A stretch of 64,000 nt of DNA, from the NCBI GenBank assembly GCA_011109175.1, contig RDEW01000017.1, positions 372,001 through 436,000 of the forward strand, in the 5' to 3' direction. Under the pieces are notes generated by a model, which had not been told where the DNA came from, made no database searches, and saw only the letters and a program-made list of their open reading frames with translations. Positions 960 through 59,829 of the stretch are shown piece after piece (the stretch's first letter is position 1; every line of letters starts with the position of its first letter). The stretch comes from Dicyema japonicum (lineage: Eukaryota; Animalia; Dicyemida). The translations under genes were made by a program, and so were the position numbers.

Positions 960-3900
960 AAATGAATAAAAATTATTAAATTAAGGCATCTGAATGACCA
1001 TGCTATTTCCCCTAACAATAGCCAACGAGATACGTTCTCGGAACCAACCAGTCTCTCGCGGATCCTTGGTCACAGCTTGAATCATGGAGCCGATCTTACG
1101 AACCAACTCATCTGCTTGGGGGCCAAGGATTCCTGACGTTTCCACCGCGAATGGAACAAAAATACTCCTCCGAAATTCTCTGGTACTTCCTCCTCTTTCG
1201 TTCCTCGGCCTGCTTTGAAGCATGTCCTGGGTCTGAAGCAGAAGCAACCAAATTAGACGGGGAATAAGTATCAACACACGTCGCGTCCCAGATCAGGTTT
1301 CGTCCGTTGGCGAATGGAAAAGTCGTCATCCCATCAGGGCGTTTTCCATCGTTTCGGGAAAGACCAGCAGGTTCTAACAGGCAATGGTGTCCAGCAGAGG
1401 CAAGGGAATTCTTTAATGTCATGTTAAGACAGGAGTGCCTGGGGAAACGACCCGCACTCATCTTGCATGACAAGGGATGATAACCAAAAGGATCGATCCA
1501 ACGTCCACAGCGGCATTTTCTTTCGGCACACAATTTAAGACCAAGACGAAGCGAGGTAGCTATTCTCACAGCCTCATCATCCAACAGGTTTCCAATTTCG
1601 GCAGATGGATAAGCGTTCATCCAGGCCCCCGTCGAGTGACAACTGGCTGTTTTGAGGCAGGCAAGCCTTCTTACATCTTCCGTCTTTTCAAGGGACTCTT
1701 TCTTCTTTTCGAAGACACAAAACAAATAGGACTTTTGCTTATCACAATTGACCGGAGCATTCAGGTACAAATTCATCCATTCATCCCAGGCTCCCGACGG
1801 CGTCAGCGGTACGTTTAGTCCGGAAGTAGAGTGAAGGACCGTATCCACTAAACGCCTTGACGAGCCGAACGAAGATAAATAGGCGCCCAAAGCAACGTCC
1901 GAAGGAAGAGAAAGACCCAAACCACGCAGGCTACAGGGAGTGAGGCCTGTAACCATCCGAAATCATCAAAACAAACATTAAGAATGGACCCCATCGTTGA
2001 CCGGATATCCATATCAATTAACGATAGAAGGTCTTTTTCGGCGTAGCATGGGGATCCCCGTAGAATAAAAAGGAGTTTTGGGAGAAGGAGACAATTCTTC
2101 AGCATAAAAAAGGCGACATGACGGTCCAAAAAACTCATCCTGTCGGCATACTGACGTAAATTAGTCCTCTTGCCTTCCAATAACTCCCTCACCCGGTTTA
2201 CCAAAATCCCACACCCAAGGAAGTCGAGAGAATCAATATGAGTCTCCCTAACCCCTGGGATGATTCGCAGAGTTTTCTATGAAAAAGGTAGAATGAATCG
2301 GAACTCAAATTCAGATTAATTGCTTCGCACTTTTCATTGTTAAATTCCAGACCGATTTTTCCACACAAACTCTGATCGAGCAACTTTGGAGAGAATATCA
2401 TCGGGACTTCCACCGAGAATACAATCGTCCAGATACCAGACGTTCAGTGGAGTGCAACGGTCCTGGGCAATATGGTCGATAGACAAGGAAAATAGAAGAG
2501 GACCGAGTGGGTCCCCCTGTTGAACTCCGGATCCGGACGAAATAATTCCACTGCCAAAAACAAGAGGGGATGGATCCGAATACGCGAGATATACAAAGGG
2601 ATAAATCTGAGGAATCCTCCTCCTACAGGTATCAAGGACGGTGTCCCTTCTGACTGAATTGAAGGCATTCCGGAGGTCCAATTTGAATAAAACTCTGTCC
2701 TCAACATTCAATTCAGCTGATTGTGAGCAAATTCTCTCACTGCGTGGATCCCAGCTTCACAGCCGCCATTGATTCCGACACCAAGCTGCGAAGGACAAAA
2801 TTCGGCTGAAATTCGGGAGATAACAAAACGACAAGCCATTTTTGCGGATAAACGTCGAAATACGTTTCCAATTGCAATGGGGCGAATACCACCATCTTTC
2901 TTTCCAAGGCCCGTTAGATTCGCCGAAAAGAGGAGATTCCGACCAAAATCGGAAACGTTTCCGGAAAGCATGCGAGCTACGAGATCCCGGGTTCGCTCCA
3001 AGAGTAGCGATCCAGGCCTGCCGACAGAATGGGACACCAAGTCTGACAGATGGCCAGGTTTGAGACCGTCAACTCCTCCACTGCTACTTCTTCGGAAAGA
3101 ACAAAGAGCGTTGTAAATGGCTGAAGTGGAAATATCATGCATAGATTGTTCTGGACGAACAGGTTTACAAAAGTCTTCTGGTTCAGGAGGATGTTTCTGT
3201 CCCAATATACAGAGTGTCTTCTGGTTCAGGAGGATGTTTCTGTCCCAATATACAGAGTGTCTCCTGAGTGGCTTTCACTGGGTCAGAATCCGTACAAACA
3301 GTTCGAACTGCAGCAGTAAGATCGCCTCCATCAATTTCCTCCTGACACGAGAGCTAAGCCTCTCAGGAGCCATACTGGATTGTTTGGAATTGGACTTTGG
3401 GAAGTAATCAACTGGGGAAACAAATAATTCTTCAGCCAGGGACTCCCATGAATACAAAAAGGCACTCACGCGCTTCTTCAGGACATGGGATAGAGAGGGT
3501 TTCCGAGAAGATGGGGCAGGCTTACGCTCTAACCCCATAGCCAGGACAGGGAAAGGGAAAAGAACCAACCAATCCTTTTTCGAGCCATTGGACACAGCTT
3601 TCTCAATGCAAGAAGAAAGGGCAGAAGCAATTGAGATCCGGGAAGCCTTGGGGATCCTGACAGGGATAATCTTCCTTTGTCGCGTGTTTGATAATAAAAC
3701 CAGAAAATCCTCCGGAGACATGGCTTCCAGAAGATCTGATACAGATGATGATGACACAAAATGATCATGAGGTTCAATTTTAGTGAGTTCCAGACGCACG
3801 ACCACGAGGGAAGTGATCGAGCAATTTTCTTGGATAGTTTTTCATAACCTATGTGGTAGTAACCAACACATACAGAACATTGAATCCCGACTTGCGAGAA

Positions 3901-9869: not shown

Positions 9870-12550
9870 GGAAATATTTGGAGTGGTATCAACAAGCTTC
9901 TGGGACGTATTCCACCAATTATTGACGGAAGCAAAGCTTCTCTACCGCTGGAAGTTTGTGTCCACTTGGTGTGCCTACGCTGTGATCACCCATGTATCTA
10001 CGTTCGTATCCGTGGAAAATTGGACAATAGTCCTCTCCCTTATGCCATCATGCTTTCTTGACGACCACAAGATGGTCACCTTTTCTCTTGTCCGGGTCCA
10101 CCTCCAATTTCTGGTCAGAACAAAATACACGTGTATGGTCTCTGGGAGCGTCCGTTCTTGTTAACCACTGGTTTCTTTCACTTGAAGGGATCATGGGTAA
10201 ATAAATATTGGTAGTCACTTTCAGTTTCCTCATGACTCATGTAAAGCAAATGATCAGAATTATCTTCTCCTACAAAAGCTGACCTTCGAAAAAATACTTG
10301 TTGGAAAATATAGAAGTAATTTATCTCGATTTTAGGCTTTCTATATAAACAGTACTTCGAAACGACCATCGGCTACGACTGCATGCGAAACCAACATGGT
10401 ATAATCGAATCTAAAGTTGATCGAAGACCTATTTCACATCTATCAACCCTACATGAGTTTTATGGCTCTGTGACGTGCTCAAGTTACTTGAATCGGATGG
10501 TTGAGGTGGTGACATCTTTATTCACTAAATGCCTTCTCCTAAAGATGAATTTAACCTCTTTTACCCATCTTGTGGACATTAACAAATGAAAATCTTAGTG
10601 GCATTAGATGCACTAGGTAAGGAAACGTATAAACCAATGTTAGGGATTAAATCTCATCTGGCTAGGTAGTTGGGGAACTTCGACGAGTGGCCCAGATTTT
10701 TTTCCATTAGTTAAGTATACAGTGACCATTATATTATTAGCACTGTTGTAGGGACTAATTAATTTCCCACGTGTATTGCACATGAAACTATCATTTCCAC
10801 TCTTTCTTCCGTAACCTCGGTTACAGACCATATTTCTAATCAAATCGATATCGTATGCAGTTTATTGGCAAGAATTGACAAGGCTGTTCGCCGTTGGTTA
10901 TGGAATACTGATTCCCAGTCTTTGGGATAATAGGATTATATCACGCAGTTTGTAGAGGCTGTTGGGTCGAGTCTCAGGATGTGTTTGAATAGACTTCACC
11001 ATACTTCAGTGATAACCAAGCTGACGGGTTCTTAAATGCCAATGCTTGTTAAGCCAATGGAAACGAATCACGCACCAGTTGCCAAGAAACAGTGAGCATT
11101 GCTGCAAAAGATGACGATTTTAAAGGGCTGAGGGAACCATCTTCGTTAACAGGGATCTTTGGGTCGAGGCGCGATTGCACTCCCAATTTCAGTGATGGCT
11201 TCTTTAAAAATTTTTCCGACCGCTCCAAGGGTTTTGAAACGATTGAGACAAACGGAAGCAACCTTAGAGGGCTGAGTAAAATCAGCTGACTCCAGCCCAT
11301 GTTTGATGATTTCACTGATGGCGGTGTGTCTGAGACAACATCCAGCGCTTCTTGCCATAAATGATGTATTCACTGTCGCCCAGGAGTGTTCCAACTTTTT
11401 AAATTGTCAACATTTCTCGTCTGTTCGGTTCACCTCTCTACCGATTGTTACAGAGTTAGTTCTTTCCGAGTTAACTCCCAGAAATTACTTTTCATGGGGA
11501 CAAGGTGATATATTAACTGTTCTTTGGGAGTTGATTTAACATGGGAGATTCAGTCTACGTCATCTGCTTTTATTAGTTTCCTTAAATCTTTCAGTGCCGC
11601 TTTAAGATAGACGATGAATGGAGCAGGGGACATTGATCCGCCTTGAGGTGCTTCAGTGGTTGTTCCGAAGGTCCTGGGTTGCGCGGATCCAATCTTCACA
11701 GCCAACTCATTGTCCGTAAGCAGTACACGAATAGCCCTAAGAAAGTTGTCGTTTAGAATAGTCTTGAAGATTTTCGTTAGTTGATCTCTTCAGATCGGTT
11801 CACATGCGGGACTCATGTCAATGCCAATGTGGTGGTCGTCGTTTTGAATTTCTGAGATATTTGGGGTTCTCGTGCACAGTGTTCATTATAGCAGGAGATT
11901 ATCATTCTTAATTGGCGAATATTCAGAGTTACAGACCGTTTGTTGAGGGTTTGTGAAACCTTTGGAGCTGTTTGAACAATAATAAATACACTCGTCGAGA
12001 TTAAAGCGCTATCACGACACGCCTCAAATATTTTGTTTGGTTTGATAGCACCTTGGATTATTTATGTTAAAACCCCAAGACCACCAAGAAAGAAAGAATT
12101 ACTCGCTAAATTAAGTGATCCCAGCCTCCAACATCTCTCGAATTCTCTTCGAATGCTCCGCCAATTAACCAACAGCGTTTCTGAAGTGTCTTCTTTTATT
12201 CTACCAGAGTGCACTTTTTTTAATGCCGATCTGAATTCCTCCGCATGAACCACCCTCTTTCTGAATGGGTTTCCTAACTTGATCTGATTTACATGTCACT
12301 AACGGATACCGTCTCTGATCTTAAAGCCTCGTTTATGACCTTTTTGTGTGGAGATGGAATTCAAAAGTGTGCCACTGTCCTTGGAAAAAACCCTGTATGG
12401 GTAGGCATGCCAAGGGAAAAGAAATATGTCAGGAGAGTCGCTTGTACAATTCTGGAATTTATTTTCAATTTTAAAACAAATTTTGAAACGTGTGGCACAT
12501 ACGGGACCTTAGTTAATATAACGTTCTTTGGTTCTGTGAAAGTAATTTTT
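9870..12550 (-). mobile_element. Heavily decayed non-LTR retroelement debris
   Basis: Only scattered motif remnants (PIIPKTG, LIDVK.VFD, RH.AI, GGLGV), not in one consistent order. Confidence 0.3.
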
Positions 12551-12560
12551 ATTTCTATCT

Positions 12561-14600
12561 GGTGCAATGTCGCTAGTTGGTTTGAAATTTTTCTTCTTCC
12601 CTCTGATGGCGTCATTGGATCCACCTTACTCAAAAGACGCCCAATACCTGGCCGGCATTCAAAAGGATCTGACTATTCATTCCACTGGTAGAAAATTTCG
12701 TTCCCTGGCGACGAGCCCCAGGACAACGTCCTCTGAATCACTTTTCTTGGATGAATGTCATGATGGAATGCGTCAGGATCAAGGAATTACAGTACGACCT
12801 CGCCCCAATAAAACCCCGACCTTGGGGCACCCTGTGTTTTGGGGCGATTTATTTAATAAATATTATTTTGAATGATTTTTACATTTTTTTACATTTTTTG
12901 ACCAATAGAAGCCTAAATTTAAAATACAAAATCCCGCTTATTGGGGCACTTTTTCAATCGATAATGTTAAAATTTATTATTTCATTTTTATCTTTATTTA
13001 ATTAATTTTAAAATATTTTTAAGCATGCTGCGAGCTTAGCCACCACTTGAAACAGAAGATTTCCGATTCTTTAATGAAAGAAAATACGTCAGAAAGAAAA
13101 ATTTGTCAATTATACAATATTGGAAAGGAACTGTCTCACGAATTAAAAAAATCGGAAAGGGGTTTCAAAAACACAAATATGCTCCGATGAACTTTCATCT
13201 AACAAGTTCGAATCAGATCTTTCTATTCGAATTGATCGATTAGTATTCGAAGTTTTTAAAAATTTGAGAGAGGATGGTATTTCAGTTTCAGGATTTCTCC
13301 TCAAAACTATTGCAAAAAATTGCAGCTAATCTTGACTTCAATGATTTCAAAGCATCAAATGGATGGTTGGATCGATGCGCAATGAATTATTGTTCAAAGT
13401 AATTTCGGATTAAAAGAACTCATGTGACAAAATAAAGTCAAAGATTTTTTAACGATTACGACAATTTATTTGATGAATACGAGAAAAATGAAATTTTTAA
13501 CTGCGACGAAACATCTTTTTTTGTTAAAAAATTCATGTAAATCATTTATCTCTTCAAATGATGATTGTTCTGGTAAAACGAAAAGCAAAGGACGAGTTTC
13601 AGTTCTTTTATGCTGAAGTCTTGAAGGTGAGAAATTAAAGCCCCTTGTTATCGGGAAATTTGAATCGCCAAGATGCTTAAAAAATATATAAACTGAGGAT
13701 TATGCGCTATATTTATTAGGTTATTTTTAGGTTTTGTACACAGCGTCAAAAATGCTTGGATGACGACTGATATTTTTGATAAATGGTTACAAAAAATAAA
13801 CTTTGAAATGGTCAAAAAACAGAAAATTTTTGATTCTTATGGATAATGCACCGTGCCACAAATTTCAAGAATATTCAAACTTATCATTTCTTAAATTTCC
13901 TAAAAATACAACAGCACTTCTTCAACCTTTAGATATGGGGATCATAAACTCTTTCAAGACATTATAACAACGTTCTTTATGAAAGATATGCTTGACGATG
14001 TAAAGGAATACTATTCGACCTTATTGAAAATTAATATGGGGCAAATAATTGCATTTGTAGGAGAAGCCTGGAGTCGAGTAATAACAACAACGATTGTCAA
14101 TGTCGGATGAAAATAAACGAACAGAGAACATGTGTTCGTGAAATTAATTCAAAAAAGCATCTGAATTAATTGATAAACATGTTTCAGGGTTAATAGAACT
14201 TGAAATAAACGGAATTGAAGATAATGGGACTTTGTATAATGAAAATGATGAGATTGAAGGGTTATGTTTAAAAGATTCAATAAGAATAATGAATAATCTC
14301 GAAACTTCTTTATTCAATACTTGCCCTGAAGGGCTCAAAGAATACTATGAATTCGGATTAAAATTTCAAAAATTCTAAGAAATAAGTATAATACTGGTTC
14401 AAAATAACTGATTATTTCTCATAAAATAAATTTTCTTTATATCGAAACGACATATTTTGTTATTAAAAAATATAAATAATTTTTTAAAATGTAAGAATTA
14501 TATATACCCTCTATATTTGGGGCACCTTTCTATTGGGGCGGGGTCGTACTGTAGTTAGTTTGGTTTTACTCTTGGTCTTTGGAGTGAGTTTATTAATTAA
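12561..14600 (+). mobile_element. Pseudoknot-core SINE (subfamily A) interrupted by a Tigger insertion
   Basis: A-box-like head GGTGCAATGTCGCTAGTTGG, core at 12608-12670, body matching 28405-28585 and 35540-35645, and tail gttagtttgg...ttattaatta after the transposon. Confidence 0.75.
12790..14551 (+). mobile_element. pogo/Tigger DNA transposon, both ends present, decayed transposase
   Basis: 21-bp TIRs CAGTACGACC(T/C)CGCCCCAATA and TA TSDs at 12788-89 and 14552-53. Remnants include FKASNGW, IFNCDET, KLKPLVIGK, AWMT, MDNAPCH and LQPLDMGII. Confidence 0.95.
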
Positions 14601-15099: not shown

Positions 15100-15240
15100 A
15101 ACAAATGATCCTTTTCCGTACCGCCCTGGCACTAGGACCACCTGAAACAGGTAAATCACATGACACTACTATATTTGAAAGGGGGAAAAGTGGAATAGAA
15201 CTAAGGATAAGAAATCTTCAATCAAGTAGCCCAGAATTGG
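15100..15240 (-). mobile_element. Pseudoknot-core SINE copy (subfamily B)
   Basis: Core at 15106-15167. Head GGGCTACTTGATTGAAG and B-box-like GTTCTATTCC (15192-15201). Confidence 0.7.
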
Positions 15241-30099: not shown

Positions 30100-30382
30100 T
30101 TAATTAAATATGTATCCCACGTCACAGAAGCAGTTCTTCCAATGTCACGTGAGTCCATTCAGAATCAACATAAAAAGTAGAAGACTTCCATTCCTTGCAG
30201 TTGTGGGAACTCGTCAAGTGGAATGGGGAGGAGCAAATGATTATTTTACGCGACACCTTAGACAGGTGGATCACATTGCGCCATTTATTTATTAACCCCG
30301 GATACGCCATTCAATTAGGAAAGAGAAGAGGAGGAAAAAAAGAAAAAAGCAGAAATCTTCAATCAAGTAGCCATATGGCATC
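30100..30382 (-). mobile_element. Pseudoknot-core SINE copy (subfamily B), partially deleted, with a 19-nt nested insertion
   Basis: Head GATGCCATATGGCTACTTGATTGAAG and core remnant GTGATCCACCTGTCTAAGGTG. The body aligns with 50600-50720. Confidence 0.7.
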
Positions 30383-30559: not shown

Positions 30560-30665
30560 GATTTACTCAGCAAAGTAATGCTATTATGCTCTTTCCTTTC
30601 TTTGATGGTGTCATTGGATCCACCTTATTAAGGAGATGCCCATTGCCTGGCCGGTATTCGAAAAC
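30560..30665 (+). mobile_element. Pseudoknot-core SINE fragment (subfamily A)
   Basis: gatggtgtcattggatccaccttattaaggagatgcccattgcctggccggtattcgaaaa; the last P2 strand is missing. Confidence 0.75.
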
Positions 30666-35249: not shown

Positions 35250-35754
35250 TTTGCTCCCGGATCACCTAGTTAAGAAAAGAGTCCTTAACCAACTAAGTGA
35301 TCCCAGTTCTCACCGTCAGAATGATGCACATGACGCAGCACTACGTACATCCAAATCCGCCATTGTAGGTACCTGTCCACTGAAGTAGGTTCGAGTGAAA
35401 CCTTTTATATGCCGACCAACCAGTGGGAGCCTCCTTAAACAAGTGGACCACATGACGCCTCTTGGAAATTGAATAAAGCAAAGAGCAGAAAGTAATCCCC
35501 CAACTTGGTTTGTAGCGGTACAGGACTGACGTGTTCCGCCTTCACCCAAGGACAGTGATCCAAAGGATGTTGTCAACGGAATTGAGGCAGATTCCAGAAC
35601 TAGTCGCCAGGAAACGAAATTGTCTCCCTATGGAAAGAATATTTAAATCCTTCTGAATACCGGCCAGGTAATGGGCATCTCCTTAGTAAGGCGGATCCAA
35701 TGACACCATCAAATAAAGGAAAATAAATTTTCATCCAATTAGCCACATAACGCC
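35250..35754 (-). mobile_element. Two pseudoknot-core SINE copies in the same orientation
   Basis: Head GGCGTTATGTGGCTAATTGG at 35754 and core at 35645-35707. A second degenerate core is at 35397-35459, and the 3' motif ctgggatcacttagttgg is near 35300. Confidence 0.7.
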
Positions 35755-35847
35755 ACACATCATGCACGATATAATAATTTAACTAATAAAAGTAAATCGA
35801 AGGGAAAATAGCTAAGAAGAATAATTTAACTAATAAAAGTAAATCCA

Positions 35848-40169: not shown

Positions 40170-40966
40170 ATGGTCAGATCACCACTAAGAAGAAAACGGT
40201 GATTATATCAATCAACCCACTCGGAGTGAACAAACTAATTAACAAGTTACTTCTGAAAATAAGTGAGTCCGAATCAAAACTCCCGCGTAGTGTGCGAGTT
40301 GATCTCGCAAGGTTAAGATGCGACATCCCTGAATCTACACCCATAGTCGTATAAATTGGGTCCACAAAAACCCAATCCTCTCAAGAGATGACAGAACATT
40401 TATTCGTCTGAAAGGGTAACATTTCTATCTTGACTCTCAGCATCTGAAGTACCTATGAGAATTGTCTTTCTAACTCAAAATATTGGTCCTCAATAATAGA
40501 GGATCGGGTTGATATGACTGAAGGAGATTGAAAGGTCAGTTGATTGGAACGTTGAGGTGGTGTCTACTATTACTGAGTTATTTCATCCTCTACTCTTCTA
40601 AAAAACATTGGATAAAGGAAATGGACATAGTGTCAATATCAATCATCGGAAAAGCTTAGGGAAGGATAAACTCATTAAGTCTAGTGAAAAGGAACAGTAA
40701 ACTGAAGTGTATCCATTCCCATGGATCCAGTTGCAGATAGACGAATCCTCTAAACACACAAGTCCACAGAGCAACGATCCATTTTGATTCTATACTGGCA
40801 TGGACGCATAAAGAAATTTTGAGCCGATGCCATGTCCAATGAGAAGAGCTGTTCAGGATTCTCGACCCCGCCGGACTCGTCCTCCCCTTTGGGATCACTT
40901 AGTTAGATGAGAACTTTTATTTCTTTCTCTTTGACCCAGTGATCCTGGGGGTAATAATAATAATAA
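40170..40966 (+). mobile_element. Decayed LINE 3' end with (TAA)n tail
   Basis: VDLARLRC remnant; ends gggatcacttagttag...cctgggggtaataataataataat. Confidence 0.65.
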
Positions 40967-41006
40967 TGGGACGCCTCCTGAGAAAGGTAGATCACATGAC
41001 AGCATC
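40966..41006 (-). repeat. Partial pseudoknot core
   Basis: Reverse complement GATGCTGTCATGTGATCTACCTTTCTCAGGAGGCGTCCCAT. Confidence 0.55.
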
Positions 41007-41124
41007 AGGAAAATCAAACCACAGATCAATGCCATAGAAATTGAGTGAAGAACAAGAATTCCTTCACCAAATGAAAATCAAACCCACTGATCATTTCATA
41101 TGCATACTGTTTAGAATAATTAAT

Positions 41125-41200: not shown

Positions 41201-41312
41201 ATAAATAATATTTTATTGTTAAAAATAAATTAATTAATAATAATTTAATTAAAAAATATTTAAAATTATTCACGTGGAAATTATATTTGAAACAAGAATT
41301 ATAACTAAACTA

Positions 41313-42782
41313 ATGACTAGAAAAGATAATTTTAAATCCCTTGGAATTTGTTCGTGGATTGCTAATCACTGCGACACAGTTGGAATTCGAAAACCTACCC
41401 CAGTTCAATCATCTTGCATCCCTCCTATTTTGGCTGGTAGGGATGTATCAGCATGTGCAAAGACAGGAAGTGGGAAAACAGCTGCATTCGCGCTGCCAAT
41501 AATCCAAATACTAGAAAAAGACCCATATGGAATCTTCGCCCTTGTTTTGACTGCCTCACGTGAACTGGCTGCTCAGATTGCGGACCAGTTCTCCCTCATC
41601 GGTCGTCCAATGCATCTGCGGACCGTTTGTGTAACGGGAGGAAGAGGTTTGCCGTTAAACAGCATTTTAGATTATGTGGAGCAGCTACGGGTCCTTTCTG
41701 AAATCCCCACGTGGTTGTTGCCACTCCTGGAAGGCTGGCTGATTTGCTGGAATATCACAGTGGAGATTTGGCAGCATCTTTGTCCAAACTACAGTTCCTT
41801 GTTTTGGACGAAGCTGATCGACTTCTGGAAGGGGATTTTGAGGCTCAGTTGAGTTCGATTATCAGTTTTTTGCCGTCGAAGAACCGCCAGACATTAATGT
41901 TCAGTGCCACCGATAGTCCCCAGCTGAGAAAAGCTATCGAATCTTCTCAAATTGTCCCATTTGAATACCACGAGGTTGATTCAACCAATTCTGTGGCGAC
42001 TGTGGATCTCCTTGATCAACGATTCGTCGTGATGGAGGCTGACAAAAAGGACTCTTACTTGGTCGTACTCCTGGACTCTTATCTCAAAGCTAATCCGTCC
42101 AGTTCTGTGATCATTTTCACGAATCAGTGCAAGTTTGTCGTTGTTCTAAGTCCAGATACTGTCAAGTCCTCGGGATGCTATGCGAGAAAGTGGGAATTTG
42201 CGTACAAGTCCTCCATTCTTTTTTGCCTCAGAGAAAGAGACTCGCTTCTCTGAATTCTTTTCGCTCGACGAGTTGCAGAGTCCTTTTGGCTACGGACGTG
42301 GCTGCTAGGTTACACGTGACATTATTTTTAGAGGTTTGGATTTGCCTGCTGTGGATCTTTGTGTCTGCCACAATGTCCCGAATGCAGCAAGAACTTATGT
42401 TCATCGTGTTGGGAGGACAGCCAGGGCAGGGAGATCTGGGGTTGCCGTTTCTATGGTGTCACAGTTTGATATCTCCTTGTTGAAGGCTATTGAGGCTCAC
42501 ACTGTTTTTTTCTGGATTAAATTTATGCAGGGGTCAAAATGAGGGAGTATTCCATTGATGCCGGAGAAGTAGCACGTGTTCATGCTGAGATTCTCTTTAT
42601 AAATTACAGGCAGAGAGAGTATTGAGTGAAGTTTGAGCTTTAGATTTTGTTGGAGAAACAGTTTGGTGCTCAAAAGAGTGGTATAAGAAGAAACGGCTTC
42701 TCTTTGAGGTAGTCATGGGTTTTGATTGTTGTAGAAACAAGAAAATCCACAACCCATTTCGAAGAAACAAAAACAATCTTAA
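41313..42782 (+). CDS. DDX49: DEAD-box helicase DDX49/Dbp8
   Basis: PTPVQSSCIPPIL.GRD..ACAKTGSGKTAAFALPI...DPYGIFALVLT..RELA.QI.DQF, DEADRLL, FSAT, ATDVAARGLD and HRVGRTARAGR. Single-base frameshifts are present and the 3' exons are tentative. Confidence 0.9.
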
Positions 42783-49520: not shown

Positions 49521-50005
49521 TTGTTTCAAAATACGCCGACGTATCAATTACTCTTTCAATGTAGAAACCATCAATTTCCGCAGGATTCTTATCAACCCAT
49601 AAACTGTGGGGGACATACACATTTATAATTCTTAGGTAGCTCATAGTGGGGAAAGAATCATTCATTTAAGTTGAAGAACACCAATTCTATCGTCAGTACT
49701 TAAGTATCGGGATATACTTGGACAGCAAATCACTTATAGCAAACCCCAGACCATAGTGCTTTGACTCATTGAGAGGAAGATTAAGTGATAGTCTCCACGA
49801 CGCTTATCCAATCCATTGTTCATTATAGTCTTCTAAAGATATCCGATACCTATCTTGTATTTCTCTAGGTCTTCGCACAAGATTTCTTTTCCAGACTTTG
49901 GATAGCTCCATGACTAGCCATCTTGGGTTTTACAGAAATATTATTCAAGAACCACGTCAGCAGCTCAACCAGAATAAAATTCAATTTATTTTTTACAGCA
50001 ATTAT

Positions 50006-51608
50006 TATTATAACCCCGGGAACACAGAAAAGAGAAAAAAGTTATCGTCTAATTAAGTGATCCCGGTGTCAGTGCGTCCTCCTTTGTTTTGACTTTGTCT
50101 GCAATCGTTTATGATCGTCCAAAAGGGGGAAGGTTTGATCTCAAATTTGCGAGCATACTTCTGGTAGGCAAGAAACTCATCTTCAAGGGAGCTACCAGAA
50201 GATCGTACTATTTTCAAGAATTTTTGTTGTTTGTCACCGAGATGTTCCATAACTTTTTTGAGATCTAATGTGTTCTTCATTTCTGATGTAGGCGTCATTT
50301 TGTCACATTTAAGGAGGATCCGGAGGCATTGGCTTTGTATGACCTCTAATTTGTTTTGCGTGGATATTGACAAGGGTGTAATCCATGCCGTACATGCATG
50401 TTCCATTGTATGTAGAATAAACTGTTTGTATAATAATTTGAGATGAGAAAGTGAAGATTTTGGAGATCTAGCAAAGGTCTTGAGGATCCCCATCTTTTTT
50501 TGAACTCTTGAAATTATTGTGTCCACATGATGTGTGAACGTTATTTGTATTTTATTTATTAACCCCGGATACACCGAGAAAGAAGTTATAGTAAACAAAT
50601 AAGTGTATCCAGTTTCCACTTCTACAGAAACAGAGCCCATACGGAATCAGCATAAAAGGTAAAACGTCCATTACATGCAGTTGTGGAAACCCCTCCACTA
50701 AAGTGGGGAAGAGCAAATGATCCTTTTTCGTGCCGGCCTGGCACTGGGCGTCACCTAGACAGGTGGATCACATGACGCCACTCTATTTAGAAGAGAGAGG
50801 AGGAACAGACAAGCAAGCGGAAAACTTCAACCAATTAACCACGCAGCACCACGTTATCAATGGGTCATATGTAACTCCAAGGATTGATGGGTTCTTAATA
50901 ACTGGGATAAGCTCTTCATTCCAAGTTAATTTAGGATCGAAGGATGTAGGTTTCCTGTATGAGGAGATAATCGCAGTGTTCGACTTTTAGGGGATATTTT
51001 CATGTGGTTTTTGAGGAACCATGGGTTCATAATGTCGAGGGTCTCCTGAACTCTTCACGCAGCTTCTTTATGGTCTTCATGTCTTGCTGCAACAATGAGA
51101 TCGTCGGCATAAGATAGAAGAATGGTATTTTGGATGTTTGGATTTGGAAGGTCTCTTGTAAATAAATTTAACAAGGTTGCTGATAAAGGGGATCCTTGAG
51201 GGACTCCGTTGGGAAAGTATCGTTGTCTTGATTTTTTATTATTCATAACAACTTGGCCTTTTCTACCATTAATGATTTGGCCAGCCACATCGGGATTTTC
51301 GGATGGATATCGGTGTCAAAATTTTTTGTTGTTAGAGTCTTCCTCGGTACCGAATCAAACGCCTTCTCGATATCCAGATCGACAAATACCGTTCTTTTAT
51401 GTGGTTTTGAGTAGTTCAGTTCATCCGATATGAACTGAATTAGTTTTGTTAGATGTGTTGAAATTGAGTATCCCGATCTGAAGCCATGTTAAACTTGCAA
51501 GATCAAGCGAATGAGTAATCTTATGGAGGATTAATTTTTCCAATGTCCTTGAAATAACAAAGAATCGATATTGGACGATAACTCCGGGGGTCGTCTAAAG
51601 CTTTGTTC
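50006..51608 (-). mobile_element. 5'-truncated I/Jockey-group-like LINE with 16-bp TSD
   Basis: SYRPISI, GVPQGSPLS, YADDL, LGVTYD. 3'UTR ends cccggggttataataat. TSD tttttacagcaattat at 49990-50005 and 51609-51624. Confidence 0.9.
50545..50850 (-). mobile_element. Complete 306-bp pseudoknot-core SINE with 7-bp TSD, nested in the LINE
   Basis: TSD acgttat at 50538-44 and 50851-57. Head GGTGCTGCGTGGTTAATTGG, core 50718-50779, tail atccggggttaataaataaaa. Removing it restores YDPLITFTHH. Confidence 0.9.
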
Positions 51609-55344: not shown

Positions 55345-56845
55345 TATTGACATTTTTTGCATCAATTTTGCGATATTCAATTTTAACATTTTTTAAATTT
55401 ATTTTAACAGTGCAAATTACATCTTTGACAGTGGAACTAACAATGTTAATTAACAACTTAATCAGATAATGGAATCCCAAGCGTACAATTACCATTTATT
55501 TTTTCAACATTCCTGTAAAAATGTCGTATTTTCTCCCGCGTTAGATGTGCTAAAGAATAGTCCAAAGCATTTTGTAGTAATTGAGCTCAAAATTCGGTCA
55601 AGGTTCCATTTTCTGCTGCAATATAATCATTATGGGAATTGTTGTGATAAATACGTCTTTATCCCAGCCTTAAAATAGAAAAACAGCCTTCGCATTGATT
55701 AAGTTGAGGAGAATATGGTGCATCAAATCTTCGAATAATATGTTCTACTCGTATACCTTTAAAATTTCCTTGATTTTTATGGATTGGAGCATTATCCATA
55801 TAAATAATAAGTTCCTCTCCAGCTAAACTGTCAGATAATGCCGTCATAAAATTTATAAATTTCGATTTTATAGATCCAATGTGTGATTCAATTCTCACAA
55901 TTGTTCCGTTGTCATCAATTGCTAAAATAACGTAGAGATTCACCCTTTTGCTTGCCCTTACTGGAACTATCGCACGTGATCCTATATGGGATCGGCTGAA
56001 TTTTTTTAAAGTGAAGAATTTGAAATTTGATCGTCCAAATGTATTTTTCTATTTGTATTACGTTGATAATCCAATGCAAATATTTTTTTTTCTATATTTT
56101 CCAGACTATACCTGGAAATTGGTTCTCTTCGCAGCATTTTGTAGGTAATCAATCGGCCATCAAGTCGGTTATATATTGTCGCAATACAAACTTTATTATT
56201 TATCAATGTTCCTATTTCCTTCAATGTTATCGCTGGATTATTCTCAATTTTTTTCAATTATCAAATTCATATCATATCCGTAAGTTTAATCGTAGCATCC
56301 TTCTACCTCCATGTTTACAAACATACGGATTTCCACTTTTTACGATGGCTATAGCTGTTGTCCTCTTGACTCCAAGATCTCGAGCAAGCTGTATATAATC
56401 GCCACCCTCTTCATCCTTATTTATATGTGCTCTTCTCGTAGCTTCTGATATTTTTGAATTTTTTCTTGACATAAAATCGGTACAAGAACAACGAATCAAG
56501 AAATATAAAATAAATCACAAATCGTATTTGGATCAACTATGATAAACGAAGTCAAAATTGATATAAAAAATGTCATAATAGAATATCTCATTGTCAATAT
56601 TGAATATCACATTGTCAAAATTGATATAAAAATGTCATAATAGAATATCGCATTGTCAATATTGTATATCACATTGTCAAAATTGATATAAAAATGTCAT
56701 AATAGAATATCGCATTGTCATTGTATATCACATTGTCAAAATTGATATAAAAAATGTCATAATAGAATATCGCATTGTCAATATTATATATCACATTGTC
56801 AAAATAAAAATAAAAAATGTCAAAATCGAACTGAAAATGGTATAG
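55345..56845 (-). mobile_element. IS630/Tc1-mariner-like DNA transposon
   Basis: HTH region (LARDLGVKRTT; NPAITLKEI), YMDNAPIH and PYSPQLNQCEG.FS. Inverted subterminal repeat similarity between about 55352-55402 and 56551-56826. Confidence 0.8.
56551..56826. repeat. Tandem array of ~62-bp units (4 plus a partial)
   Basis: Units start at 56551, 56614, 56676, 56735 and 56798, each with three TGTCA motifs. Confidence 0.95.
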
Positions 56846-58581: not shown

Positions 58582-59194
58582 ATGTGTTCAGCTATATATG
58601 CACAAGAATTGTGGAAGAACAAGCAATCGGATACTATGAAATACCTGCTTCGAGTGAGATGTTGGAGTGCTCGTCAGCTTCCTAATGTGTCCAGGATTTC
58701 CCGTCCGAGCCGTCCAGAAAAGCACACCGTTTGGGTTACAAAGCTAAACAAGGATTTGTGATATATCAGGTCAGAGTAAAAAGAGGATCTAGAAAACGTC
58801 CTGTGAAGAAAGGGATAACATACGGAAAACCCGTCACCCATGGGGTAAAGGAACGGAAGACTAAACAGAATCTCCAAGCCATTGCCGAGGGCCGTGCTGG
58901 TCGTCGCTGCAACGCCCTGCGAGTGTTGAATTCTTATTGGGTCTGTCAAGATGGAATTTACAAGATCTATGAAGTGATCATGGTGGATCCTGCTCACAAG
59001 GTGATTAGAGATGACCCCGCCATAAACTGGATTTGCAACCCCAATAAGAAACACAGAGAACTCCATGGTCTCACTTCAGCCTCTAGAAAGTCACGTGGTA
59101 TTGGAAGGGACATTATTACCATCAAACAATTGGTGGGTCTTCTCATGCTGCTTGGAGGAGACGAAACACCGTCAGGTTCGCCAGAGTGCGTTGA
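58582..59194 (+). CDS. RPL15: 60S ribosomal protein L15 (eL15)
   Basis: QELW.NKQSD...[26 protein letters not shown]...LNSYWV...EVI.VDP.H...HRE.HGLTSA. Restoring two missing A's gives 204 codons plus stop. Confidence 0.95.
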
Positions 59195-59829
59195 TTTTTT
59201 CCTTTTAATAAATTCTGATTTTGTTGTTTTCTATTTGTAATTTTTGCAATTTGTGTTATTCTTAAATTCTCCCCCAATGTCGAGCAAGCAGTCATGATTA
59301 CCCGACTAGTCATAACATCTATCAGAGCGTATAGTGATAAAAGGTATTACTTTTTAGTCTAGTATTAGATATAATTTTTATCTAGTTGATTTGTGCTATT
59401 TTGCGCTCGAAAATGATAATTATACCAGGTTTTTAGTTGGAATTTGTTCATTCTCCAAGTTTTGTGGGACGAAACCAAATCTGCTGTCGTAGTATCTAGT
59501 TCCATTAAAAATCGCTGAGGAACATAATCACTTACTACATTTGTAACATCGTTAAGAATTTCACGTGGTCCATAATATTATGATACGCGTATTAGAAGTT
59601 ATATCTGTCTCCGTCCCATCACTAGCTATGAAGGTGGACAAATTCTCCACAAGAATAAAGTGCAAAAAGCTACCAGACGATTGAAAGATCTCAATATCCT
59701 AGCACAGTTTTTTTCGAACGGGGGGGGGGGAATTTTTTAATTATGATTTTTTTAATTCATGAAATTCAGCTTTATTTAACCAACAAAGAAGTAAACAATT
59801 CATTCGAACAACTATTAACTGTGCAAGTC

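Follow-up and report, generated by a model that had tools for sequence, protein, structure and literature searches.

Ribozymes like that of the hepatitis delta virus (HDV) have been described at the 5′ ends of R2, RTE and L1Tc/ingi elements and in the internally deleted SIDE, NARTc and SIDER elements (PMC4035085, PMC3414825, PMC5786205). The descriptor that Yamagami et al. (PMC6326823) give for the family includes a G1-Y pair in helix P1 and C-R-R-A in the J4/2 junction. For the catalytic centre, it also fixes the two C-G pairs of P1.1, formed by CC of loop L3 with GG after the 3′ strand of P1, and a U, a C and a G in L3, the U-G reverse wobble at the metal site being called crucial for catalysis. 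For 25 years, short interspersed elements (SINEs) have been known to have conserved central domains, on the function of which there is still no agreement (PMC11481361, PMC5786205). Both kinds of system bear on a SINE copy at 50545-50850 in DNA from Dicyema japonicum (assembly GCA_011109175.1, contig RDEW01000017.1, positions 372,001 to 436,000), a stretch of 64,000 nucleotides that is referred to here as the window. The helices of the 62-nt core of this element can be drawn in the order of an HDV ribozyme.

We lean towards reading the core as the central domain of a very abundant SINE superfamily, structured but not cleaving, and perhaps derived from the 5′ ribozyme of a long interspersed element (LINE). 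On present evidence, the element counts as new or undescribed among the SINEs that have a conserved central domain, the named domains being compared by description, and not as a new ribozyme. The first-pass annotation had left a choice between a variant self-cleaving ribozyme and a non-catalytic structured SINE core. Its SINE anatomy and HDV-like order stand and the non-catalytic core is favoured; the self-cleaving ribozyme is not, as the active-site bases are absent and the head of the element is retained.

The element and its core

The SINE had been described as a 306-bp element bounded by a target-site duplication (TSD), and this holds, with the 7-bp ATAACGT present on both sides. Excision of the element and one TSD copy rejoins the frame of a LINE, giving ...ILGVTYDPLIT FTHHVDTIISRVQKKMGILK..., that is, ...LGVTYDPLIT followed across the junction by FTHHVD.... 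The upstream part of the restored frame contains a reverse-transcriptase (RT) domain (Pfam RVT_1, E = 2.7e-11). From the restored RT frame and the TSD, it follows that the SINE was inserted into an older LINE and that the element boundaries are exact. The marks of a non-autonomous retroposon are present: the TSD ATAACGT, a tail of CCGGGGTTA and (TAA)n that corresponds to the LINE 3′ end, and a depth that drops towards the 5′ end. Written out, the tail is ...ATCCGGGGTTAATAAATAAAATACAA; it includes CCGGGGTTAATAAATAAA, with (TAAA)-type repeats at the end, and is similar to the host LINE 3′ end, CCCGGGGTTATAATAATAAT, at about 50001-50020. A second SINE family in the window has a piece of the host LINE 3′ untranslated region at its end, and the LINE copies within the 64-kb window are 5′-truncated. 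Judged from these sequences, the SINE and LINE here are a normal SINE-LINE partnership.

The A-box-like head of this copy reads GGTGCTGCGTGGTTAATTGGTTGAAG and is located within the TSD. For abundance and for element ends, the contigs as which four public runs of this organism are stored were aligned with the element, the largest run giving 20,554 pieces. In the loose ends of these contigs, the family consensus and many copies have 15 nt more at the 5′ end (GCCGCGTGGCGCCAT), therefore the copy in the window is slightly 5′-truncated. The head of the longer copies contains TGGCGCCATGG besides the A-box-like TGGTTAATTGG, and neither ARAGORN nor Rfam calls a tRNA there. Runs of T4-T7 are present on the sense strand between head and core, at 50780-50850 (minus), 30300-30340 (minus) and 12540-12600 (plus), and there is a run of T13 in this position in one subfamily consensus from the contig data. 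Such runs are terminators for RNA polymerase III (Pol III) in many eukaryotes.

Read from 50779 to 50718 on the minus strand, the core is GGCGTC atg TGATCC ACC tgtcta GGT GACGCC ca GTGCC aggcc GGCAC gaaaaa GGATCA. These stem and loop strings are as first quoted, and the proposed HDV-type order is borne out: P1, P2, P3 and P4 follow in that order, all 20 of the 20 pairs are Watson-Crick in this young copy, and a descriptor scan matches it. About half of family A has a G at 50751, which makes GTGGCGCC, an 8-mer identical to one in the extended head GCGTGGCGCCATGG. This may be chance, or the core in its 3′ half may itself be tRNA-related.

Copies in the window were collected by blastn and a profile search, and six cores (one cut before P2′) and two partial cores were found, at the positions that had been listed at first pass. 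They group into three families. Family A comprises 50718, 15104 and, as a partial core, 30226; family B has 12603, 30602 and 35643; family C has 35394 and, as a partial core, 40965. Head and core are common to all three, and the bodies and tails are unrelated; the same central block in otherwise different SINEs is what is taken to define a superfamily. Summed contig depth on the SINE is 20-60 times that on the flanking LINE. Depth on the core is about twice that on the head and body either side, indicating that the core module is common to more families than any single head or body.

Two further arrangements were seen among the copies. A 20-bp, tail-only SINE fragment (ATCCGGGGTTAATAAATAAA), flanked by a short TGGCG repeat, lies within the P1 5′ strand of a further SINE core at 30245-30290 (minus), and from its sequence is taken to be an extreme 5′-truncated SINE insertion. 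At 35394-35760 (minus), two SINEs, family B and then family C, stand head to tail without a spacer, like the tandem arrangement described for bivalve SINEs.

Outside the window, a copy harvest with a degenerate core pattern in metagenome contigs gave 17 loci, all of which are chance matches without the 3′ half, and no core was found in viral contigs or GTDB genomes. No homologues of the LINE C-terminal piece were found. Full-text literature searches with pieces of the core sequence returned unrelated primers only, and no paper linking cephalopod SINEs with self-cleaving ribozymes was found.

Ribozyme features and the would-be cleavage site

Some of the features expected of an HDV-like ribozyme are present. 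The G1-Y pair is found as G1-C33 in 6 of the 8 copies. C-R-R-A precedes P2′ in five of the six cores that cover the region (CGAA, CGGA, CAAA, CGAA and CAGA), in agreement with the first-pass annotation; in family B, the candidate catalytic C is 2 nt distant from P4. These features, together with a complete HDV helix order, contiguous strands and segment lengths near those of the ribozyme drz-Spur-3, would suit an active, non-canonical HDV-like ribozyme that cuts 5′ of the P1 G and uses the C before GAAAAA as general acid. The tRNA-like head would then be released and a 5′-OH SINE body left, with partial cleavage letting uncleaved RNAs propagate the family. There are precedents, since HDV-like ribozymes exist directly behind phage tRNAs (PMC10879173) and moderately active examples are found in the SINE-like SIDERs (PMC4035085). 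However, adequate folds can be inactive, as is the case for TcoSIDER1-beta and TbSIDER1-beta (PMC4035085).

Such an active ribozyme is considered improbable. The P1.1 C-G pairs of the published descriptor (PMC6326823) are absent from the aligned cores, where J1/4 reads CA (in decayed copies, CC or UA) and CC is missing from L3. Families A and C would allow a 2-bp substitute for P1.1 (U19-A35 and G20-C34), which would favour activity, but it fails in family B. Likewise, the U...CG of L3 is absent, the loop being UGUCUA in family A, UUAYUAA in family B and UGUUUAA in family C; the first U is present and there is no 3′ G. The lack of the canonical L3 G and of GG in J1/4 had already been pointed out at first pass. 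In addition, the candidate catalytic C (50730, core position 50) is T, or U in the RNA, in about 22 % of family A depth.

Searches against known models agree with this. A canonical HDV descriptor (L3 UCC, J1/4 GG, CNRA) finds nothing in the whole window. Rfam gives no match at the gathering score on the window and no ribozyme model at E ≤ 10 on sequences of 506 nt or 91 nt. The comparison with HDV- and CPEB3-like models, which had been proposed at first pass, thus returned no HDV, CPEB3 or drz match even at this lenient threshold, and the matches obtained (isrJ, sraL and weev_FSE) are chance matches only. Two other identities were considered and rejected. The core is not a tRNA or other known small RNA, there being no Rfam or ARAGORN support, and a hammerhead reading of GUGCC...GGCAC-GAAA is excluded by the lack of a CUGANGA box.

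The position of the fold is also informative. Upstream of the P1 G there are 71 nt of head and linker within the TSD, or 86 nt in full-length copies, and the head is found upstream of the core in every non-truncated copy in the window, in families A, B and C. The placement of the fold downstream of a retained Pol III-like head, claimed from the first, is therefore upheld, with at least 71 nt on the head side in all head-side-complete copies. Unlike the retrotransposon ribozymes, for which the two are expected to coincide, the 5′ end of the element is not at the cleavage site in the window copies. Of the break points in the contigs, those with the best support fall at subfamily junctions and at the true ends of the element, 5′ and 3′, with 69 and 77 contigs in the largest run; among the best-supported clusters listed, there is no cluster of loose ends at the P1 G, and no major class begins there. 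It has been argued that a 5′ ribozyme within a SINE would truncate the head (Kojima 2018; PMC5786205). Cleavage 5′ of the P1 G would remove the head with its putative promoter, yet the head is retained, and the context therefore argues against cleavage.

Chance, conservation and origin of the fold

The topology on its own is easily found. When G-U pairs are allowed, a descriptor of the HDV order yields about 90 start sites per strand in the window. When it is restricted to Watson-Crick pairs, the only matches are this element and one AT-only, low-complexity site, and dinucleotide-shuffled windows give 0.17 matches per window on average. Matches with at least 12 G-C pairs occur in 0 of 1000 shuffled windows; the real match has 13 of 19 pairs G-C in the scanned form. 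The descriptor was composed after sight of the match, and with this post hoc choice allowed for, the arrangement is more than a by-product of composition. This finding is compatible with an active ribozyme as well as with a non-cleaving structured domain.

It is less compatible with the explanation, which we regard as unlikely, that the core is conserved as sequence only, either as a head-linked module or as a signal at the DNA or protein level, for example a site bound by a factor or a portion of the Pol III promoter. Apart from simple hairpins, the helices would then be without a role, and the HDV resemblance would be incidental. The low cost of the topology with G-U pairs, at some 90 starts per strand, fits this, whereas the failure of all 1000 shuffles to reach an all-Watson-Crick, GC-rich arrangement of 19-20 bp does not. 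What conserved SINE domains do is in general not known (PMC11481361). Within the core, GGATCATTTGC at P2′ is, on inspection, weakly similar to a B box, which would suit this explanation.

Across the eight aligned cores, pairing is kept in 81 % of cells, or in 84.5 % when P3 is taken as CCU/AGG, and sliding the 3′ partners by one to three columns reduces it to 33-50 %. Families A and B retain P1, P2 and P4. The P3 pairing ACC/GGT is confined to family A; CCU/AGG, one register over, is kept in all families.

A number of results weigh against a conserved structure, and hence against the reading favoured here. With the 3′ letters reshuffled within columns, pairing is still 79.5-83 %, and the observed value is reached in 94 of 500 shuffles. 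Pairs altered on both sides number 3, compared with 3.0 expected from the column shuffles. RNAalifold on the five best copies keeps P1 and P4 alone, and its covariation term is +0.24. Covariation does not reach statistical significance, as would be expected were the core conserved as sequence only, and the usable copies number only about six and are mutually related. In the young copy, the nested minimum free energy is -23.6 kcal/mol, with an extended P1 that competes with P3, and its z-score against shuffles is -1.45; the nested part of the HDV-like fold has -18.5 kcal/mol, to which P2 contributes about -6.7 kcal/mol as a duplex, before the pseudoknot penalty. P2 is broken in family C. In family A, 5 of 62 sites in the core and 13 of 166 in the body are polymorphic, an equal density of about 8 %, so that there is no sign of extra constraint on the core within the young family; this too is in line with conservation of sequence only.

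The earlier claim that the stems change compensatorily is therefore not supported, given that the 81-84.5 % pairing is set against 79.5-83 % in shuffles and that double changes are no more frequent than expected. In P1, the change of GGCGTC/GACGCC to GGTGTC/GATGCC had been presented as compensation; it is in fact two CpG to TpG transitions that yield two wobbles, and compensation is excluded in favour of CpG decay. The change proposed for P4 fares no better, since four copies differ in what stands for the G/C pair, having GC, AU, GU and AC. Double changes that stay paired between families A and B are U-A to G-U in P2 and G-C to A-U in P4, and the former is a true double change, as had been suggested.

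Weaker hints of RNA-level constraint on the sense strand come from three observations. Among the non-Watson-Crick cells on the SINE sense strand, G-U outnumbers A-C by 20 to 7 (nominal p 0.01, the cells being non-independent and some of them from truncated rows). In the P2 strands of families A and B, pairing survives every substitution. Finally, the two commonest core polymorphisms of family A, A29>G (position 50751, about 47 % of depth, giving a U-G wobble in P1) and C50>U (22 %), each turn a Watson-Crick pair into G-U. The strand-specific G-U excess and the pairing-neutral P2 substitutions count against conservation of sequence only.

It is possible, if doubtful, that the core is a SINE domain already described, for which the 66-bp Meta-domain is the best candidate; this overlaps with the other explanations and is no strict alternative to them. 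Were it right, the element itself would not be new, and the proposed fold might be. By description only, the resemblance lies in the length of 62-66 bp, a head before it that is putatively of tRNA type here, variable 3′ parts and a cuttlefish member, SepiaSINE2 (PMC4824008). The similarity to octopus of an RPL15-like open reading frame (ORF) in the window, from which a cephalopod affinity is read, points the same way. However, the domain is said to adjoin the head directly in MetaSINEs, and here a pyrimidine linker of about 35 nt lies between them. Likewise, there is no core in about 96 kb of Octopus sinensis, Littorina, Haliotis and Lingula, and relatives of the last three host MetaSINEs. These sequences comprise 20.6 kb around the RPL15-like gene of O. 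sinensis, with no core and no repeat shared with the window, and 75.6 kb from the other three, where nhmmer gives two weak, non-homologous matches in Haliotis. The core does not contain CCTTGGGAAAG, the motif published for the Ceph-domain (PMC5786205). Family B has CCTTGGGTGAAG in its body, at 35540-35551 (minus); it is near to CCTTGGGAAAG, which is the conserved heart of the Ceph/CORE domain according to Kojima 2018, and family B may combine this core with a CORE/Ceph-type domain.

For the preferred reading, a non-cleaving structured domain, the following model is proposed. The core RNA would most likely fold into a compact, GC-rich structure, with P1 and P4 as solid helices, P2 closing a pseudoknot across them and P3 having 2-3 bp in a variable register. 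Such a fold would not cut itself, or would do so too slowly to matter. As to its role, the likeliest guess would be a stable module of structure that protects or shapes the SINE transcript, or to which a factor of the host or the LINE binds. R2 templates perform better with a stable HDV-like fold, wherever it cleaves, and this has been attributed to stability and not to catalysis (PMC11331408). In origin, the core may have been the HDV-like ribozyme of a LINE 5′ end, its active-site nucleotides having been lost once it stood behind a Pol III head. Descent from a ribozyme is attractive because of the order of the helices, together with the +1 G and the C-R-R-A junction, and an origin of SINE bodies in RTE and Vingi 5′ regions is known (PMC5786205). 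As a GC-rich double pseudoknot with the helix order of the LINE ribozymes, the core would offer a concrete, testable idea of the origin of a conserved SINE domain and of its role in RNA.

A bolder version of this descent, to which we give very little credence, is that the core, as central domain of the most abundant SINE superfamily of the genome, came from the 5′ HDV-like ribozyme of the partner LINEs and still cleaves slowly or conditionally, with a P1.1 of U-A and G-C, no L3 G and a C-GAA junction. Were this so, Pol III transcripts of the SINE would be split into head-bearing RNAs that propagate and head-less RNAs with a 5′-OH. No earlier case of a self-cleaving ribozyme placed behind the Pol III head of a SINE would then precede it, and a conserved SINE core would have a first functional explanation. 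Cleavage by the core would widen the sequence space of HDV-like ribozymes and contradict the published expectation that no ribozyme stands behind a SINE head. If the core does not cleave, a ribozyme-shaped fold would have been kept, or have arisen, for a structural role.

Features of the window and comparison with described systems

The coordinates of the element, its parts and the other copies of the core are collected in Table 1.

Table 1. Parts of the SINE at 50545-50850 and further copies of its core in the window.
Feature	Position	Strand	Remarks
SINE copy, family A, 306 bp	50545-50850	-	Slightly 5′-truncated; order: A-box-like head, pyrimidine linker, core, body, LINE-like tail
5′ TSD, ATAACGT (7 bp)	50851-50857	-	
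3′ TSD, ATAACGT (7 bp)	50538-50544	-	
Head: A-box-like TGGTTAATTGG, then GGTTGAAG, and pyrimidine-rich linker	50780-50850	-	Upstream of putative cleavage site
Conserved core, 62 nt	50718-50779	-	
P1 5′ strand, GGCGUC	50774-50779	-	First G is the would-be cleavage site
P2 5′ strand, UGAUCC	50765-50770	-	Pseudoknot strand
P3 ACC/GGU with L3 UGUCUA	50753-50764	-	Alternative register CCU/AGG
P1 3′ strand, GACGCC	50747-50752	-	
P4 hairpin, GUGCC-AGGCC-GGCAC	50730-50744	-	Last C (50730) is the candidate catalytic C
J4/2, GAAAAA	50724-50729	-	With the preceding C gives C-R-R-A
P2 3′ strand, GGAUCA	50718-50723	-	
Family-specific body and tail	50545-50717	-	
Core copy, family B	12603-12672	+	
Core copy, family A	15104-15172	-	Decayed
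Partial core, family A	30226-30285	-	P4 deleted; P1 start split by 20-bp tail-only SINE insertion; also delimited as 30250-30285
Core copy, family B	30602-30664	+	Ends before P2′
Core copy, family C	35394-35463	-	P2 broken
Core copy, family B	35643-35712	-	
Partial core, family C	40965-41007	-	5′ half only

Other features of the window include the RPL15-like ORF, which is intronless and lies at 58731-59240 (plus). It has 91 % protein identity (72 % at the DNA level) to the 'ribosomal protein L15-like' gene of Octopus sinensis, a single-exon gene, and at most 71 % protein identity to any other among the matches listed. Its appearance is that of an ancient, divergent retrogene which cephalopods have in common. 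From this ORF, and from the lack of shared repeats around the octopus gene, the host was read as a cephalopod-like mollusc that is not closely related to O. sinensis. At 55659-56499 (minus) there is a decayed DNA transposon of the Tc1/mariner type, one ORF of which matches the Pfam DDE_3 endonuclease (E = 1.3e-08); the ORFs upstream of it are helix-turn-helix-like in appearance. An exact look-up of one transposon ORF of the window gave no record. A 282-aa ORF at 1108-1956 (minus) has the C-terminal motif ...KRPDG...WDATCVDT..., which is typical of some retroelement proteins, and has no Pfam match and no exact record in the public collection. A DEAD-box helicase gene at 41274-42253 (plus), DDX49/Dbp8-like by its motifs, is in two ORFs of different frames that overlap at 41711-41852, and the frame change may be either a very short intron or a frameshift.

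Among known systems, the ribozymes of LINE 5′ ends share with the core the nested double-pseudoknot order, a +1 G paired to a pyrimidine, C-R-R-A before P2′ and a place in a retrotransposon. They stand first in the element, however, and their cut sets its 5′ end, whereas the core lies at least 71-86 nt inside, behind a retained Pol III-type head, and is without the P1.1 C-G pairs, the L3 U...CG and an Rfam match. The comparison can be made strand by strand with drz-Spur-3 of the sea urchin, which is proven to be an HDV-like ribozyme and the sequence of which was parsed by us from primers (PMC5984629). In both, P1 has 6 bp and is closed by G1-C, J1/2 is short, P2 has 6-7 bp, P3 has 3 bp and is flush with P2 and P1′, L3 has 6-7 nt, J1/4 has 2 nt, and C and then purines precede P2′. 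The difference is in the active site, as drz-Spur-3 has UCCCCGU in L3 and GG in J1/4, forming the canonical P1.1, where the SINE core has UGUCUA and CA.

The SINE superfamilies with MetaSINE, Ceph-SINE, CORE, V and Deu/Nin domains resemble the element in having a conserved central block of 50-70 bp and a tRNA-type head, which is putative in the element (PMC4824008, PMC5786205, PMC11481361). Bodies that differ, LINE-derived tails, very high copy number and a host of cephalopod affinity are further points in common. They differ from the element in that here a pyrimidine linker separates head and core, the likeness being by description only; for their domains, no RNA fold is proposed in these three papers (PMC4824008, PMC5786205, PMC11481361).

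The Theta ribozymes (PMC10879173) share with the SINE an arrangement in which a tRNA or tRNA-like unit is followed by a fold of HDV order whose cut would free the upstream unit. These minimal HDV-like ribozymes are directly downstream of phage tRNAs and act in tRNA processing, with cleavage demonstrated (PMC10879173), whereas the SINE is a eukaryotic retroposon that needs its upstream unit to be kept attached.

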